Origin: Macrostomum lignano
Lineage: Eukaryota
Length of the DNA stretch: 64,000 nucleotides
Assembly: GCA_002269645.1 (NCBI GenBank)
Contig: NIVC01000619.1
Span: forward strand, 144,601 to 208,600
Direction of reading: 5' to 3'
Shown here: positions 9,479-56,988 of the stretch, piece after piece
How the letters are laid out: the number at the start of each line of letters is the position of its first letter
Position numbering within the stretch: position 1 is the first letter of the stretch
Notes under the pieces: generated by a model
The model's input: the letters and a program-made list of their open reading frames with translations, nothing else
Told to the model about the DNA's origin: nothing
Databases searched by the model: none
Made by a program: the position numbers and the translations under genes

Positions 9479-9661
9479 CTAACCATGAAAATGAACGTGG
9501 AAGCCCTTCTTCCTCAGCTTCGGGAACTGCTCCTCTGACATCTTGGAATCGTCGGAGTCGGACGGATCCTCCTTCGACTCGCTTTCGGCCTTGGCCTCTG
9601 AGGGTTCGACAACGACCAGGGCTGCGAGCACCAGAAGTCCGAGAACCAGTTGCCACTTCAT
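9479..9661 (-). CDS. P1: secreted His-rich prepropeptide (60 aa; mature GFHVHFH-G)
   Basis: MKWQLVLGLLVLAALVVVEPSEA signal-like segment, acidic spacer, RKK, GFHVHFHG, stop; one of 11 near-identical intact copies. Confidence 0.9.
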   Translation of the reverse strand: MKWQLVLGLLVLAALVVVEPSEAKAESESKEDPSDSDDSKMSEEQFPKLRKKGFHVHFHG

Positions 9662-11036
9662 GATTGCTTGAGTCGAGTCGATTCTTCGAGCTGTGTGTAG
9701 ATTGAGTCGAGTCTGAGCTTGTTGCTCTGAGCAGTCGGCAGCTACGAATTTATACGCATCGGATCAGCACGTGTTTCCGGTCCGTTGAGAGGCGTTGTTT
9801 GAGTTGAAGACTTTCGCATGAGCAGAGACAGGCGTTGTTTCAAACGAATATCATGTAGCGTATATTTGCTTGCTGACACCCGAGCAATCAAACGAGTACC
9901 GCTCTAGCTTTTTCTCAGTGCAAATTTATCTAACGCACGGCACTGCACTGCAGTCACTTGACTCAGTCGCATATTGAAGCCCAATGACGCTATCTATCGA
10001 CTGTGGAGAATAAATGCATGAAATCGAGATATCTACAGATTTTTTGGCTACTGTGTGTTGATTTCTGCAGTTTCTAATGGTAGTTCTGATTTGTCAGAGC
10101 ACGCTCGTGTTCAGAATTTCTTTGATTTTATTCCTTATTCGGTCAAGTACGCGGATTTCAGTCGCCGATTTCGTGTGATTGAGCGATGCGGAGAAACCAG
10201 ACGCATGTCCAGAAATGCATGGAAGCGTGCAATATGCCAGCTTATATTCTGACTTCGCCTTGTTCTGTCTACCGTTTTGCGGCAACTGCCGACTTTCCGC
10301 GTTTCCTTTGACACTCGCTTTGAACGTGACTGGATATTTTTTAATCATTTCAACTCCACTAAGCTCTCATTACAGGATTATTTGAATGGGGTTTAACAGT
10401 AGAAAGACCATGGGGGTGTATTTCAAATACACACATTTTTCCTTTGTCTGGATCTCCCAAAACTTTTCAAACAATTGCCATGAAAATCCAGAACACGGGC
10501 TAAAATTTTCCGCTCTATGCGATGAAGCAACTTCGAGAATCACGAAAAATCGGCATCGTCTAGATATTCAACAAAAACCACCAACATTGAGAAATATTTT
10601 CAACATTGAGAAAAAAATCTACTACTACTACAACTACTACTACTACTGCTACTACTACTACTACTACTACTACTACTACTACTACTACTACTACTACTAC
10701 TACTACTACTACTACTACTACTACTACTACTACTACTACTACTACTACTACTACTACTACTACTACTACTACTACTACTACTACTACTACTACTACTACT
10801 ACTACTACTACTACTGCTACTACTACTAATACTACTACTACTACTACTACTACTACTACTACTACTACTACTACTACTACTACTACTACTACTACTACTA
10901 CTACTAATACTACTACTACTACTACTACTACTACTACTACTACTACTACTACTACTACTACTACTACTACTACTAATACTACTACTACTACTGCTACTAC
11001 TACTAATACTACTACTACTACTACAACTACTACTAT
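9662..11036. repeat. Segmental duplicate of 12756-14079 (offset 3094): P2 upstream region plus the left end of the TTAA element
   Basis: Identical ORFs at 10055/13149, 10094/13188 and 10179/13273; both copies end in (TAC)n. Confidence 0.9.
10619..11036. repeat. (TAC)n microsatellite
   Basis: Direct reading. Confidence 0.99.
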
Positions 11037-12570
11037 CTACACAGCCCTTGTGCCCTGATCGGCTTTGACAAATATAACAACCAGTACCATCTAACTAGGC
11101 AACCCCATGCAACTATAATATTTGTGTTGTTGAGCTTTTTAAATTTGCAAGTTGTGATGTTGAAGACTGGTAGATAAATGTGCGACGTACAGATAATAAT
11201 TTGTCGCTTTCATGACGCATCGTGCGTCAAAGTTGCAGACTGAACTCTAAATTCTGACTTGAATATGATGATGTAATAATGATGCGATGAAGATAATCTT
11301 AAATTCAACGTAAATGTGTTAACTTAGAGAGATACTTGTTCAGCAGTTTTTGGGTATACCTTCATTTTCCGGGTTTTTGAGTTTTACCGGGTACGATAAG
11401 TCAATAACTTGTGCATAATATCTCTGAGATTGTGAGTGCACTATTTACTTGGAAGGTGTGTTGTGTCCTTGGGCGGTCCGGCTGATGCTCCTAGATGAGA
11501 AGCTGAGCTTTCCGTGCTTTTTGAAAGATGACCGCTTTTAGCGGCTTTACTGAGTTTGCGCTGGGTGAACCGAGATGAGTAGGTAGCTGGTAAATGGAAA
11601 TCATTGAAGGCATCGTGCCGTAGACTTTGAATTTTCACAACTAGCTAAATGGAAGGCATGAGACCAAAACTTTGGTACCCTGCCATTGGGACCCACTTGG
11701 GATTCGGGAACCCTAGGCCGATGAGAGTGTTCAGCGATAGCGAGAGCAGTGCCGCTGGGTCAGATATTGACCATCAGGTCCTACTGTGACTGAATTCTAG
11801 CTCGTAACCTCTCTTCTAGCAAACCGGTGTATCAACGCAAAGGGGATAGAAGGCGGAAACGGGCGATACAATTGCCCTCGGCCTGTCCAGCGCTTGGTAG
11901 AGTCGAGTCACAGGCCAAAGGAAAGGCAAAGGCCGATACCAAAGTCGATGCAGTGCTTGGCCTTCTGCAAGCGGCGGTTCGGCGACCGTACCGACGTCTG
12001 TGCCATAGACTTTTAATTCCACAAAGGTCGAAATGAAAGATATGAGCCCAAAAATTTGGTACCCTGCCATTGGGACCTACTTGGAAGTTAGGGTAGAGCA
12101 TGTTAGACGAAGAGAGTCGGCTAACTGAAAAGTACGAGGCTGAATTGCAAAACATATTTGGAAGATGGAAATCCGAAACGCCCATAATGTTTTGAGCGCA
12201 TTTCAAGTAGTTTCAAATTGGCACAAATGAATAATATCCATATTTGATTGAATTTCTTCATTCAATGAATTTCTTTCTTCATGCATCAAAACTTCTCTGA
12301 TTACTTTAGTGCAAATTGTCTGCATGATCACTGGCAACTGGAAAAAAATTAACAAAGCTCAACACCACAAATATTATTGTTGCATTAAGTGTCTAATTAG
12401 CTTCTGCTTGTTGTTATATTTGGTAAAATTGTTCAGCGAATAAGGGCTTGTGTTAATTTCAGTTTACCATTCAGAATTGGGCGGTTTCAAATCAAAGTTT
12501 AAAGTTCGGTCAGCTGTGACTTGTCTTAATCTTCCGATCGATGAAGCGACTTCGATGTGCGATGTGGCTC
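11037..12570 (-). repeat. Inverted duplicate of the P5-P6 spacer (~32420-33950)
   Basis: Identical 65-aa ORF at 11441-11638(-) and 33342-33539(+); flanks are reverse complements. Confidence 0.9.
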
Positions 12571-55906: not shown

Positions 55907-56805
55907 GTGAGAAAGGAATCCATAAATCAGTCATCTCATGCACTGCAAGGTTCAGATTGAAAGCGTTGAAGCGAAGCAATGATCGACAACATTGTCGTTC
56001 CTGTGAACGAATGCGGAACCCGTGGTAAAGAAAGAAGCAGTTACGATAGGCAGTATTGTTACCCTTGCCACTGTGTTGGTAGTAGGGGCGTTTAAACTGC
56101 GGGGGGAGGGGCTCGCTTGGCTGGGGCGGGTGCGTGCGGGGTTGCGTGTGCTGCGGGGGGCGGGGGGTCACGGGGGTGCTAGCTTGATTTCTTATTTAGT
56201 CCGGTCCTCCGCTTGTTCACCGTGCATTCGTGTTTGCTCAGATTTTTTTTAGCTTTTTTTTCTCATTCGGCTATTAAATCTTTCGCAAGAAATAAATAAT
56301 TCATCGGCTGCCATTTTTTTTTCGACCCGCAGAGGTTCCGTTTCGCGCCATCCCTTGTCTTGCCTCGTTTCTTTTCCCCGCGGTTTAACTGTGAATATCT
56401 CGATTTCGAGCATTAATTTTCCAAAATAAATAAGTACTCGTGATCGCATTTGATTTGATTTGAGTGTGCAACGGATTAAAAATTAAATTCTCGTGGAGTG
56501 CGGGCAGTGCATTGCAGTGTGAAGCGGTGTGTAAGATGCATTCGCACTGAGAAAACGCTTGAGCAGTACTTGTTTGATTTCTCGCAGGTGTCAACAAGCA
56601 AACAAACGCTACATGATATTCGGGTAAAGCAACGCCTGTCTATGCTCACGCAAAAGCCTTCACCTCAAACATCGTCGCTAGACGGACCGGAAACACGTGC
56701 CGATCTGATGCGTATAAATTCGTAGTTGCCGACTGCTCAAAGCAACAAGCTCAGACTCGACTCAATCTACACACAGCTCGAAGAATCGACTCGACGTAAG
56801 CAATC

Positions 56806-56988
56806 ATGAAGTGGCAACTGGTTCTCGGACTTCTGCTATTCGCAGCCCTGGCCGTCGCCCAGCCCTCGGAGGCCAAGGCCGAAAGTGAGTCGAAGGAGGA
56901 TCCATCCGACTCGGACGATTCCAAGCTGTCGGAGGAGCAGTTCCCGAAGCTGAGGAAGAAGGGCTTCCACGTTCATTTTCATGGTTAG
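56806..56988 (+). CDS. P14: His-rich prepropeptide (GFHVHFH-G)
   Basis: Intact 60-aa ORF. Confidence 0.9.
   Translation: MKWQLVLGLLLFAALAVAQPSEAKAESESKEDPSDSDDSKLSEEQFPKLRKKGFHVHFHG

Follow-up and report, generated by a model that had tools for sequence, protein, structure and literature searches.

The window, a 64,000-nt stretch of contig NIVC01000619.1 of the flatworm Macrostomum lignano, carries a 14-copy array of a tiny gene predicted to code for a secreted peptide. Eleven copies are intact open reading frames of 60 aa, found in the ORF list and by tblastn with a 60-aa query (92-100% identity, E-values from 1e-37 to 1e-34). In addition there are one intact paralog of 63 aa, one frameshifted pseudogene and one 3' fragment; further copies were not found within the window. 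A cluster of this composition, i.e., 11 intact genes, one paralog and two pseudogenes, had been reported in a preliminary description and is confirmed by tblastn and the ORF list, positions included. Its extent was underestimated: the 14 copies are real, but they constitute only a part of a cluster running along the 208.6-kb contig, and parallel, related arrays exist on three other contigs. Copies 1 and 2 share a 3.1-kb tandem duplication. The pseudogene, copy 8, has lost its E-box/TATA block and its remnant tail reads KKK-FHFHLPGK. Copy 11 has a junction at ~46500 with an inverted piece of upstream sequence, and its 3'UTR homology ends at 46620 and restarts at ~47462. Transposons and microsatellites are abundant in the region. 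The transposons of the window are insertions separate from the peptide genes.

Table 1. Peptide gene copies and mapped regulatory and untranslated segments in the window.
Feature	Position	Strand	Characteristics	Model or match
Copy 1	9479-9661	-	intact 60-aa; L41M variant; end RKK-GFHVHFH-G-stop	NCBI model P0001, 9479-9712
Copy 1 promoter, TATA block	9747-9759			
Copy 1 promoter, E-box block	9766-9779			
Copy 2	12573-12755	-	intact 60-aa; signal variant ..ATLAVAQ	NCBI model P0011, 12573-12806
Copy 3	27213-27395	+	intact 60-aa	NCBI model P0015, 27156-27395
Copy 4	29807-29989	-	intact 60-aa	NCBI model P0002, 29807-30115
Copy 5	32234-32416	+	intact 60-aa; consensus sequence	NCBI model P0016, 32177-32416
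Copy 5 promoter core	32115-32148	+	E-box GGAAACACGTGCC, then TATA GATGCGTATAAATT at -93 from ATG	
Copy 5 5'UTR	32177-32233	+	57 nt; start ~35 nt after TATA box	model P0016
Copy 5 3'UTR	32417-32600	+	family-conserved blocks GCTGACCGGACTTTGAAC..., TTATTCGCTGA.CAGTTTTACCAAATATAACAAC	
Copy 5 3'UTR, final block	32555-32577	+	likely poly(A) signal region	
Copy 6	34060-34242	-	intact 60-aa	NCBI model P0019, 34060-34293
Copy 7	37282-37473	+	intact 63-aa paralog; different propiece; end RKK-FHLHLP-G-K-stop	NCBI model P0024, 37258-37473
Copy 8	39927-40114	-	pseudogene of the 63-aa paralog type; ATA for ATG, frameshift near 40007	
Copy 9	41225-41407	+	intact 60-aa; signal variant LF..AVAQ	identical to database protein P0007
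Copy 10	44977-45159	-	intact 60-aa	ORF list and tblastn
Copy 11	46507-46572	+	5'-truncated fragment; last 21 codons and stop	tblastn
Copy 12	50064-50246	+	intact 60-aa; L41M variant	matches P0009
Copy 13	52153-52335	-	intact 60-aa	NCBI model P0025, 52153-52488
Copy 14	56806-56988	+	intact 60-aa; signal variant LF..AVAQ	matches P0007

The expectation that genes of 183 nt would be missed by annotation was wrong for this genome: of the 12 intact copies at least 10 have GenBank models already, every one named "hypothetical protein". The annotation of M. lignano relies exclusively on RNA-seq and transcriptome assemblies (PMC5730564). The gene models are colinear with the genome, i.e., unspliced, and end with the same stop codon as the open reading frames, which bears out the single-exon layout proposed earlier. 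They start 51-57 nt 5' of the ATG, about 35 nt past a conserved TATAAAT, resulting in a 5'UTR of ~55 nt per copy. All intact 60-aa copies are preceded by a block of E-box and TATA box. In the 63-aa paralog the E-box is kept together with a TATA variant, CATATATT; the block is also conserved in Arg-type paralogs (locus L005). At the other end GGT-TAG, which borders on a hypervariable region, is conserved in all paralogs and is followed by a conserved 3'UTR of ~200 nt; past about +200 the conservation fades. Each copy is a small, TATA-driven, intronless gene with a predicted mRNA of ~0.45 kb.

The copies are under strong purifying selection. Among the 11 intact 60-aa copies pS is 0.127, similar to the extent to which the noncoding flanks diverge (0.10-0.22). 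Over residues 20-60 of these copies pN is 0.003 and pN/pS 0.027, and 13 of the 14 variable codons in this segment are synonymous (P = 1.4e-8). GFHVHFHG recurs unaltered at 20 loci, FHLHLPGK at 6; these loci are distributed over four contigs and show synonymous differences only. The copies are not assembly duplicates: ~13% of synonymous sites differ between them, as do 10-22% of positions within the conserved flanks (+1 to +200), and the surroundings are specific to each copy. The acidic stretch between signal peptide and basic site, previously described as a spacer, is indeed present; with a pN/pS of 0.029 this propiece is constrained as strongly as the peptide. Therefore, it may have a function on its own.

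In copy 5 the propiece extends to aa 49 and is followed by R50-K51-K52, the peptide G53-H59, Gly60 and TAG. The predicted signal peptide comprises approximately aa 1-18 or 1-24. By inspection, the N-terminus possesses Lys2, a hydrophobic core from W3 to V18 and small residues at -3/-1 (AVA ahead of Q, or SEA ahead of K), and this segment is nearly invariant over ~25 paralogs. All elements noticed in the preliminary description are present, i.e., the hydrophobic N-terminus, the acidic stretch (9 D/E versus 4 K), RKK, GFHVHFH and the terminal Gly. KK directly precedes the variable peptide in 22 of 25 distinct precursors and a single K in three; an extra K or R is located ahead of KK in 13 of the 25. 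A C-terminal Gly or Gly-Lys is likewise found in 22 of the 25, related sequences being counted as independent, and the 63-aa paralog has retained Gly-Lys-stop in spite of a 1-nt indel. When His-type and Arg-type genes are aligned at the DNA level, the hypervariable stretch is bordered by two conserved elements, AAGAAG and GGTTAGAT. Signal-peptide cleavage, cleavage at Lys-Lys and amidation are predicted processing steps with strong support from the sequences. Lys-Lys is rarer as a convertase site than Lys-Arg, which counts against processing. According to this prediction the near-invariant signal peptide would direct the 60-aa product into the secretory pathway, a convertase would cut after Lys51-Lys52 and separate the propiece (net charge about -7), and the terminal Gly would be converted to an amide. 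The released products would be GFHVHFH-NH2 and, from the paralog, FHLHLP-NH2 (computed [M+H]+ 879.437 and 762.441, respectively). The earlier proposal of a dosage-amplified gene for a convertase-cleaved, amidated secreted peptide is supported by the conserved Lys-Lys and Gly-stop islands, by purifying selection and by the unspliced, transcript-derived models.

The main new result is a different one. Judged by sequence comparison, the array in the window forms the histidine branch of a larger family, hitherto undescribed, with about 25 or more distinct precursors, and all but one of the ~25 are from M. lignano. An exhaustive profile search and an alignment search yielded ~30 clusters with ~74 distinct products, the sole source other than M. 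lignano being one Logan contig. Throughout the family the predicted signal peptide is almost the same; the acidic propiece and Lys-Lys come next, and then a hypervariable C-terminal peptide of 6 to 37 residues. The peptides range from 6-10-mers with a strict alternation of hydrophobic and basic residues, e.g., GFHVHFH, FHLHLP, FIHIHF, FVRVHVRF, FVRVRVRL and IFRVRVHI, to Arg/Pro- or Arg/Trp-rich ones with 18-37 residues. Arg-type and FIHIHF genes reside at 6-26 kb of contig NIVC01000619.1. In the alignment of His-type with Arg-type genes, identity is highest in the basic site (0.89), lower in the signal peptide (0.83), the 5'UTR (0.81) and the propiece (0.65), and lowest in the peptide (0.36). 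The family keeps promoter, 5'UTR, signal peptide, acidic propiece, Lys-Lys and Gly-stop while only the C-terminal peptide varies. There is no significant Pfam family and no PDB relative, homology to a named antimicrobial-peptide family was not found, all database homologs are called "hypothetical protein", and literature searches retrieved no publication on the family. The assertion that it matches no named family stands.

As to function, we lean towards a secreted host-defence arsenal of the antimicrobial type, i.e., a processed, amidated peptide from an intronless gene family; the antimicrobial role is our best guess by analogy. The build of a defence family is present: a conserved prepro-region, a hypervariable peptide and clustered genes. 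Of the functions listed in the preliminary description (defence, gland or rhabdite secretion, adhesive, seminal product) defence is best supported because the sister genes encode typical Arg-rich basic peptides, with mature charges of +3 to +15. Propiece charge and peptide charge are correlated with r = -0.77 (n=25, related sequences counted as independent). Conceivably, the propiece with its negative charge keeps the basic peptide neutral until it is released, and the large number of identical copies would afford a high dose. The short peptides have a hydrophobic moment of 2.6-3.7 as a beta-strand versus 0.2-1.3 as a helix. Those of the window carry a charge of +1 unless His is protonated. 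GFHVHFH-NH2, a 7-mer with a charge of about +1 at the pH of seawater, lacks the length and the basicity needed for classical membrane disruption. Electrostatic antimicrobial peptides are weakened by high salt. The His versions might be the pH- and metal-dependent members of the arsenal: the low pH of acidic granules or phagosomes would keep them charged and soluble, and at seawater pH they would be near-neutral, prone to form beta-strands and capable of binding Cu or Zn. This pH and metal behaviour is proposed solely by analogy. The peptide of the window is invariant and amplified, not diversified, which fits a dosage effect and equally a structural or signalling product. Data on expression site, induction, peptidomics or activity of the family were not found in the supplements of M. 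lignano papers.

The histidine pattern may also be viewed from a different angle, unlikely in our estimate. The peptides could be a secretory material, such as mucus or rhabdite matrix, glue, eggshell, stylet or a metal sink, which does not kill microbes. Released from acidic granules into seawater of pH 8, the deprotonated, alternating Phe/Val/His peptides would coordinate Zn(II) or Cu(II) and assemble into beta-sheet (amyloid-like) fibrils, or into coacervates with the acidic, possibly phosphorylated propiece. The strict hydrophobic/His alternation, with a beta-strand moment of 2.8-3.1, agrees with this, and the pattern is that of the designed, Zn-dependent fibril heptapeptides acetyl-LHLHLRL-amide, acetyl-IHVHLQI-amide and acetyl-IHIHIQI-amide (PMC10008563), although the latter are N-acetylated and the M. 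lignano peptides would have a free amine. Gly-Phe-His and Phe-Ile-His would yield a free N-terminus with His at position 3, the arrangement of the copper-binding ATCUN motif (PMC6862162). The fit is conditional on cleavage after KK, and is restricted to GFH.. and FIH..; FHLHLP has His at positions 2 and 4, not 3, and ends in Pro. One invariant peptide at a very high copy number suggests a bulk product, and the strongly constrained propiece is rich in Ser-x-Glu/Asp. Against a material speak above all the sister peptides, which are Arg-rich, not pH-switchable and antimicrobial-looking.

Two further possibilities are improbable, in our view to the same degree. Firstly, the genes might code for precursors of neuropeptides or peptide hormones, the amidated peptides signaling via receptors and the array being a recent duplication. 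A predicted signal peptide, a dibasic site, a Gly amide donor, products of 6-8 residues as in many flatworm neuropeptides and a peptide sequence strictly conserved between loci would be in line with this. However, such genes rarely occur in dozens of copies with one peptide each, the same scaffold carries hypervariable Arg-rich peptides of 18-37 residues, and the peptide strings were not found in the neuropeptide literature; to our knowledge, the window peptides resemble no flatworm neuropeptide family. Secondly, they might be other secreted effectors which deter or poison predators or prey, or a fast-evolving seminal or reproductive secretion under conflict. In cone-snail toxin superfamilies a conserved signal peptide and propiece are likewise combined with a hypervariable mature peptide. 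The diatom diet of M. lignano makes a venom unlikely. As regards reproduction, numerous lineage-specific, rapidly evolving secreted reproductive proteins are described for M. lignano in two reports (PMC5977470, PMC7336406), yet the family gene ids which were searched are absent from the supplement text of the Macrostomum comparative RNA-seq paper.

That the copies are no stand-alone genes is most improbable and already largely refuted: the ends of the open reading frames (...CATG/GTTAG, in the paralog ...CCTG/GTAAAT) resemble a splice donor as in a first exon of a longer gene, but the transcript-derived models stop at the ORF stop codon, GGT-TAG and the 3'UTR are conserved, and only 1.6-2.4 kb lie between the stop codons of convergent neighbours; a transposon or satellite ORF, suggested by the repeat-rich region, was rejected since no terminal inverted repeats flank the two scanned units (copies 5 and 14), pN/pS is 0.03 and each unit has its own TATA promoter, as was an assembly artefact in view of the distinct flanks.

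How does a putative defence family of this build compare with known systems? Flatworm neuropeptide prohormones (FMRFamide-like, neuropeptide F, secreted-peptide prohormones of planarians) resemble the M. lignano precursors in the signal peptide, predicted for the latter, the basic cleavage sites and the Gly amide donor; the same prohormone-processing enzymes, which flatworms are known to have, would act on both. These prohormones are mostly single-copy, often contain several peptide copies and have conserved C-terminal motifs such as RF-amide; in contrast, each precursor of the M. lignano family carries a single peptide, the gene copies number in the dozens, and Arg-rich, hypervariable relatives occur. 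In Hydra arminins and in the propieces of mammalian defensins and cathelicidins an anionic part balances a cationic C-terminal peptide, and they are taxon-restricted without domain matches. The family shares the anionic propiece opposite a cationic peptide, the restriction to a taxon and the lack of a domain match. There is no homology, and the products of the window are much shorter, with His in the place of Arg/Lys.

In the antimicrobial-peptide clusters of frogs purifying selection acts on promoter, signal peptide and cleavage sites while the peptide diversifies, and C-terminal amidation occurs (PMC3731216). The M. lignano family resembles the amphibian skin-peptide genes (pipid CPF/PGLa/XPF, dermaseptin-type) as a clustered multigene family with signal, cleavage and promoter regions under purifying selection and a diversifying peptide, and also in the acidic spacer ahead of the basic cleavage site and in frequent C-terminal amidation, predicted for M. 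lignano (PMC3731216). The frog genes have several exons, RXXR or KR sites and helices of 20-30 residues; here the genes are intronless, with Lys-Lys and alternating His peptides of 6-7 residues. Sequence homology is absent, and the peptide of the window is invariant, not diversified.

Piscidins, copper-binding host-defence peptides of fish (e.g., piscidin 3, FIHHIFRGIVHAGRSIGRFLTG), are rich in His and Phe/Ile, and their ATCUN motif (FIH../FFH..) has picomolar affinity for Cu(II) and causes oxidative damage (PMC6862162, PMC11256756). GFH.. and FIH.. would equally present His at position 3 of the predicted free N-terminus; FHLHLP lacks the motif. Piscidins are amphipathic helices of 22 residues, whereas the M. 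lignano peptides have 6-7 residues with a beta-strand pattern and no homology.

A similar pattern is found in the designed catalytic-amyloid heptapeptides, which form Zn-binding cross-beta fibrils with paired hydrophobic faces and outward-facing His (PMC10008563). Unlike these, the natural peptides would have a free N-terminus, have a leading Gly or trailing Pro and lack Gln/Arg/Tyr at position 6. In common are a length of 6-7 residues, the strict hydrophobic/His alternation and, as predicted for M. lignano, the C-terminal amide; FHVHF is comparable with IHVHL, and HLHL in FHLHLP with LHLHL.

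The array of precursor genes in the window comprises 14 copies. Count and coordinates, as given in the preliminary description, were borne out by the ORF list and by tblastn with the 60-aa sequence. Eleven copies are intact 60-aa ORFs with pairwise identities of 92-100%; the other three are listed in the table. Seven divergent family members used as queries disclosed no additional copies in the window. The copies are placed in both orientations and have a unit of ~700 bp in common, roughly from -260 to +250 around the coding sequence; in some pairs the shared sequence extends to 2.1 kb. 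Very long simple-sequence arrays lie between the gene copies. One type has a 4-nt unit, reaches 1.3 kb and appears as SIYL repeats in ORF translations; the other is built of 3-nt units and is translated as poly-Thr, poly-Tyr or poly-Ser. Such arrays may promote unequal exchange among the copies.

Features within and around the precursor array (positions in the window)
Feature	Position	Strand	Remarks
Intact 63-aa paralog	37282-37473	+	C-terminus RKK-FHLHLPGK
Pseudogene of the 63-aa paralog	39927-40114	-	ATA start, frameshift near 40007
3' fragment	46507-46572	+	21 codons
Simple-sequence arrays	6100-7080, 38200-39500, 50530-50950; 10600-11060, 13700-14170
Exon with potassium-channel tetramerisation domain (BTB_2/T1)	4845-5195	-	nearest ordinary gene left of the array
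Acidic/poly-Gln ORF	15544-16527		intact
Non-LTR retrotransposon	20236-24145, with 19351-19842 and 24010-24432	+	GC-rich (~60%)
Degenerate piggyBac-type transposase (DDE_Tnp_1_7)	54249-55680	-	split over three ORFs, between copies 13 and 14
SAP-domain ORF	57443-57817	+	right-hand bound of the array
Retroelement-like region	58400-61455	+	partial reverse-transcriptase match; right-hand bound, after the SAP-domain ORF

The BTB_2/T1 exon we take by its sequence to be Shal/Kv4 channel-like. The non-LTR retrotransposon has endonuclease, reverse transcriptase and zf-RVT ORFs in differing frames. The ORF just downstream of it (24010-24432) matches the C-terminus of the acidic/poly-Gln protein (E = 1e-12), and the element appears to have inserted into a second copy of that ORF.

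The array genes are real protein-coding genes, as follows from the selection signal. Among the 11 copies pS is 0.127, similar to the divergence that the noncoding flanks show (0.10-0.22); in residues 20-60 the nonsynonymous divergence is 0.003 and pN/pS is 0.027. Here 13 of the 14 variable codons vary synonymously (P = 1.4e-8). A higher pN/pS, 0.47, applies to the signal peptide's hydrophobic core, where changes are conservative V/L/F/A swaps. The window plus four further loci contain 20 sites coding for GFHVHFHG and 6 coding for FHLHLPGK, all variation among them being synonymous. The acidic 'spacer' and the terminal peptide are equally constrained. Between array copies, variants of the signal peptide are shuffled, and chimeras on other contigs combine the main-type propiece with the FHLHLPGK tail; both observations point to recombination or gene conversion within arrays.

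All homologs are entered as 'hypothetical protein BOX15_Mlig...' of Macrostomum lignano; the window itself belongs to the 208,600-bp contig NIVC01000619.1 of assembly GCA_002269645.1. The M. lignano annotation is based solely on RNA-seq-guided and de novo transcript assemblies, and gene ends derive from experimental data (PMC5730564). Of the 12 intact copies in the window, at least 10 are matched exactly and in a single frame by database proteins; because of this, the coding sequence must be unspliced. The earlier expectation that genes of 183 nt are overlooked by most annotation pipelines is not borne out here, since at least 10 of the 12 already have GenBank models. Looking up the exact 60-aa sequence among the assembly proteins gave no match because the database models carry 5' extensions. 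The models terminate at the HFHG stop codon, and those open at the 5' end start 51-57 nt upstream of the ATG. A conserved TATAAAT is located at -93, and ~20 nt upstream of this TATA box is an invariant GGAAACACGTGCC block with a palindromic CACGTG E-box. Every intact copy has this block in its promoter (e.g., window 32115-32129), as do the genes of L005, a locus with Arg-type paralogs, i.e., it is common to His-type and Arg-type genes and a candidate for a shared regulatory site of a bHLH-type factor. On the 3' side conserved blocks extend to ~+200, the last one, ...TTTTACCAAATATAACAAC, likely being the poly(A) signal region; beyond, similarity decays. From the model starts and the conserved 3' blocks an mRNA of ~0.45 kb is predicted.

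A profile run exhaustively against 1.84 billion representative proteins, together with a word-indexed search with broader alignment, yielded a family of ~30 clusters and ~74 distinct products. All but one originate from M. lignano, the exception being a 929-bp Logan contig (L004, SRR31628392). This contig is genomic-looking; its family member agrees with the others in TATA, 5'UTR and single-exon layout, has a 33-residue Pro/Arg-rich tail, and may represent an occurrence outside the reference strain or species. Parallel arrays exist on three other contigs, which agrees with the known redundancy of the assembly (PMC5730564). On the same contig as the window, at 6-26 kb, there are Arg-type genes and one FIHIHF gene. 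Three database proteins from other contigs are likely annotation or rearrangement artefacts: in P0012 one copy, read in antisense, is fused to the following copy read in sense, P0036 contains an internally duplicated acidic propiece, and P0046 is a 73-aa member with the UniRef label 'SERPIN domain-containing'.

In all members the signal peptide MKWQ(L/I/F)(A/V)LGLLL... is combined with an acidic propiece and with a Lys-Lys site (a single Lys in three). The peptides that follow are of the His type (GFHVHFH, FHLHLP, FIHIHF), mixed (FVRVHVRF, IFRVHVRF, IFRVRVHI, IFRVRARIHI), of the Arg type (FVRVRVRL, FVRLRVRI, WLRVRARVRI, FVRVRARIRL), or long and Arg-rich (FLRVRLPRVRMPRVRLPRVRLPRLRVRFRWSKK, WLLRRIRIRWRRVLRVASRVYRIYRYLPI, WRRRRRFRWRKAIRVAGKVAKAVL and one 37-residue Arg/Tyr/His peptide). 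The short ones strictly alternate hydrophobic and basic residues, their hydrophobic moment being 2.6-3.7 at 180 degrees versus 0.2-1.3 at 100 degrees. A C-terminal Gly or Gly-Lys is present in 22 of 25 distinct precursors. With propiece/peptide boundaries set by hand, propiece net charge (-4 to -16) and peptide charge (+1 to +15) correlate with r = -0.77, a value uncorrected for shared ancestry.

When His-type and Arg-type genes are aligned, DNA identity is 0.75 in the promoter, 0.81 in the 5'UTR, 0.83 in the signal peptide, 0.65 in the propiece and 0.89 at the AAGAAG site, versus 0.36 in the peptide; adjoining this variable segment, the GGTTAGAT (Gly-stop) motif forms a conserved island. Convertase cleavage and amidation, proposed earlier from the window genes, gain much stronger sequence evidence, as Lys-Lys site and Gly-stop are conserved across the family around a hypervariable segment. 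The Arg codons CGT and CGC of the Arg type and the His codons CAT and CAC of the His type are one G-to-A change apart (window and L005), e.g., CGT-CTT-CGT in FVRLRVRI versus CAC-CTT-CAT in FHLHL. Intermediates such as FVRVHVRF and IFRVRVHI are present in the same cluster, which suggests, at the level of codons, a stepwise Arg-to-His conversion.

Searches of Pfam and PDB sequences produced sub-threshold or chance matches only; a 'Lock_Gag1-like' match on P0036 (27.1 bits) was rejected, being located on the duplicated acidic repeat. Literature searches with gene ids, peptide strings and the signal-peptide string returned nothing relevant, searches of the Macrostomum literature on neuropeptides or antimicrobials brought up no account of the family, and no M. 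lignano single-cell atlas was found in the literature. The family gene ids, sought for a tissue or expression class, gave no hits in the supplements of PMC5816591, PMC5730564, PMC7336406 and PMC12896417; PMC10786194 is without supplementary text. The earlier remark that the system is not recognisable as any named family stands: the Pfam, PDB and literature searches yielded no named relative, and the genes constitute a family that is new and undescribed, its architecture being of a known kind. The earlier interpretation as a whole is supported and now reaches from the window array to the wider family.

Since the whole pattern is that of frog antimicrobial-peptide clusters, we read the family, by analogy, as a Macrostomum-specific host-defence-type peptide arsenal, in which the window represents the amplified histidine branch. 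The reading concerns the build of the family, not homology, and a defence function is inferred from it. The peptides encoded in the window are of very small size and have almost no charge at the pH of seawater; for a role in defence they would probably need either low pH, as in granules or phagosomes, or metals.

For the His branch, bulk self-assembling or metal-binding material has to be taken seriously as an alternative, because designed heptapeptides that form amyloid in a Zn-dependent manner show the same alternation with His (PMC10008563). Carried further, though unlikely in our estimate, the His branch would be a natural version of laboratory-designed catalytic-amyloid peptides. The animal would mass-produce amidated peptides of 6-7 residues with alternating hydrophobic and His positions, kept in solution by the acidic propiece and low granule pH; after their release to the sea, binding of Zn or Cu and self-assembly would give a beta-sheet material that is functional and may be catalytically or redox active. 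The branch would have derived from ordinary Arg-type defence peptides via Arg-to-His codon changes. That the genes are neuropeptide precursors is improbable: the processing signals fit, yet neither the copy number nor the Arg-rich relatives do. To a toxin or reproductive secretion we likewise accord a slim chance. We reject a first-exon reading (with the GGT of the ORF end as splice donor), a transposon and an assembly artefact on the grounds of the gene models derived from transcripts, the conservation of the stop and the 3'UTR, the evidence of selection, the differing flanks of individual copies and, for the two units scanned (copies 5 and 14), the lack of flanking terminal repeats.

To our knowledge, almost no gene-encoded host-defence peptides have been characterised in flatworms. 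With ~74 distinct annotated products, in which hypervariable basic tails follow a common secretory front end, the family would provide this field with a ready effector repertoire. As a model flatworm M. lignano is open to transgenesis and RNAi, and via the conserved promoter and 5' region one probe or dsRNA could reach all family members. The ultra-short His peptides with their alternating pattern can be synthesised at low cost; as natural candidates they could prove to be pH-switched or metal-dependent antimicrobials, or self-assembling peptides.

The family would be a further independent case of the evolutionary logic of frog skin peptides and cone-snail toxins. In frog antimicrobial-peptide clusters promoter, signal peptide and cleavage sites are conserved while the basic C-terminal peptide diversifies, and an anionic propiece, amidation and gene clustering are likewise encountered (PMC3731216); the M. 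lignano family has the same overall pattern, a likeness of build only. The predicted N-termini GFH.. and FIH.. would form a copper-binding motif as known from the N-termini of piscidins (PMC6862162; PMC11256756). Finally, the His alternation of the designed acetyl-LHLHLRL-amide and acetyl-IHVHLQI-amide (PMC10008563) recurs in the His-branch peptides.
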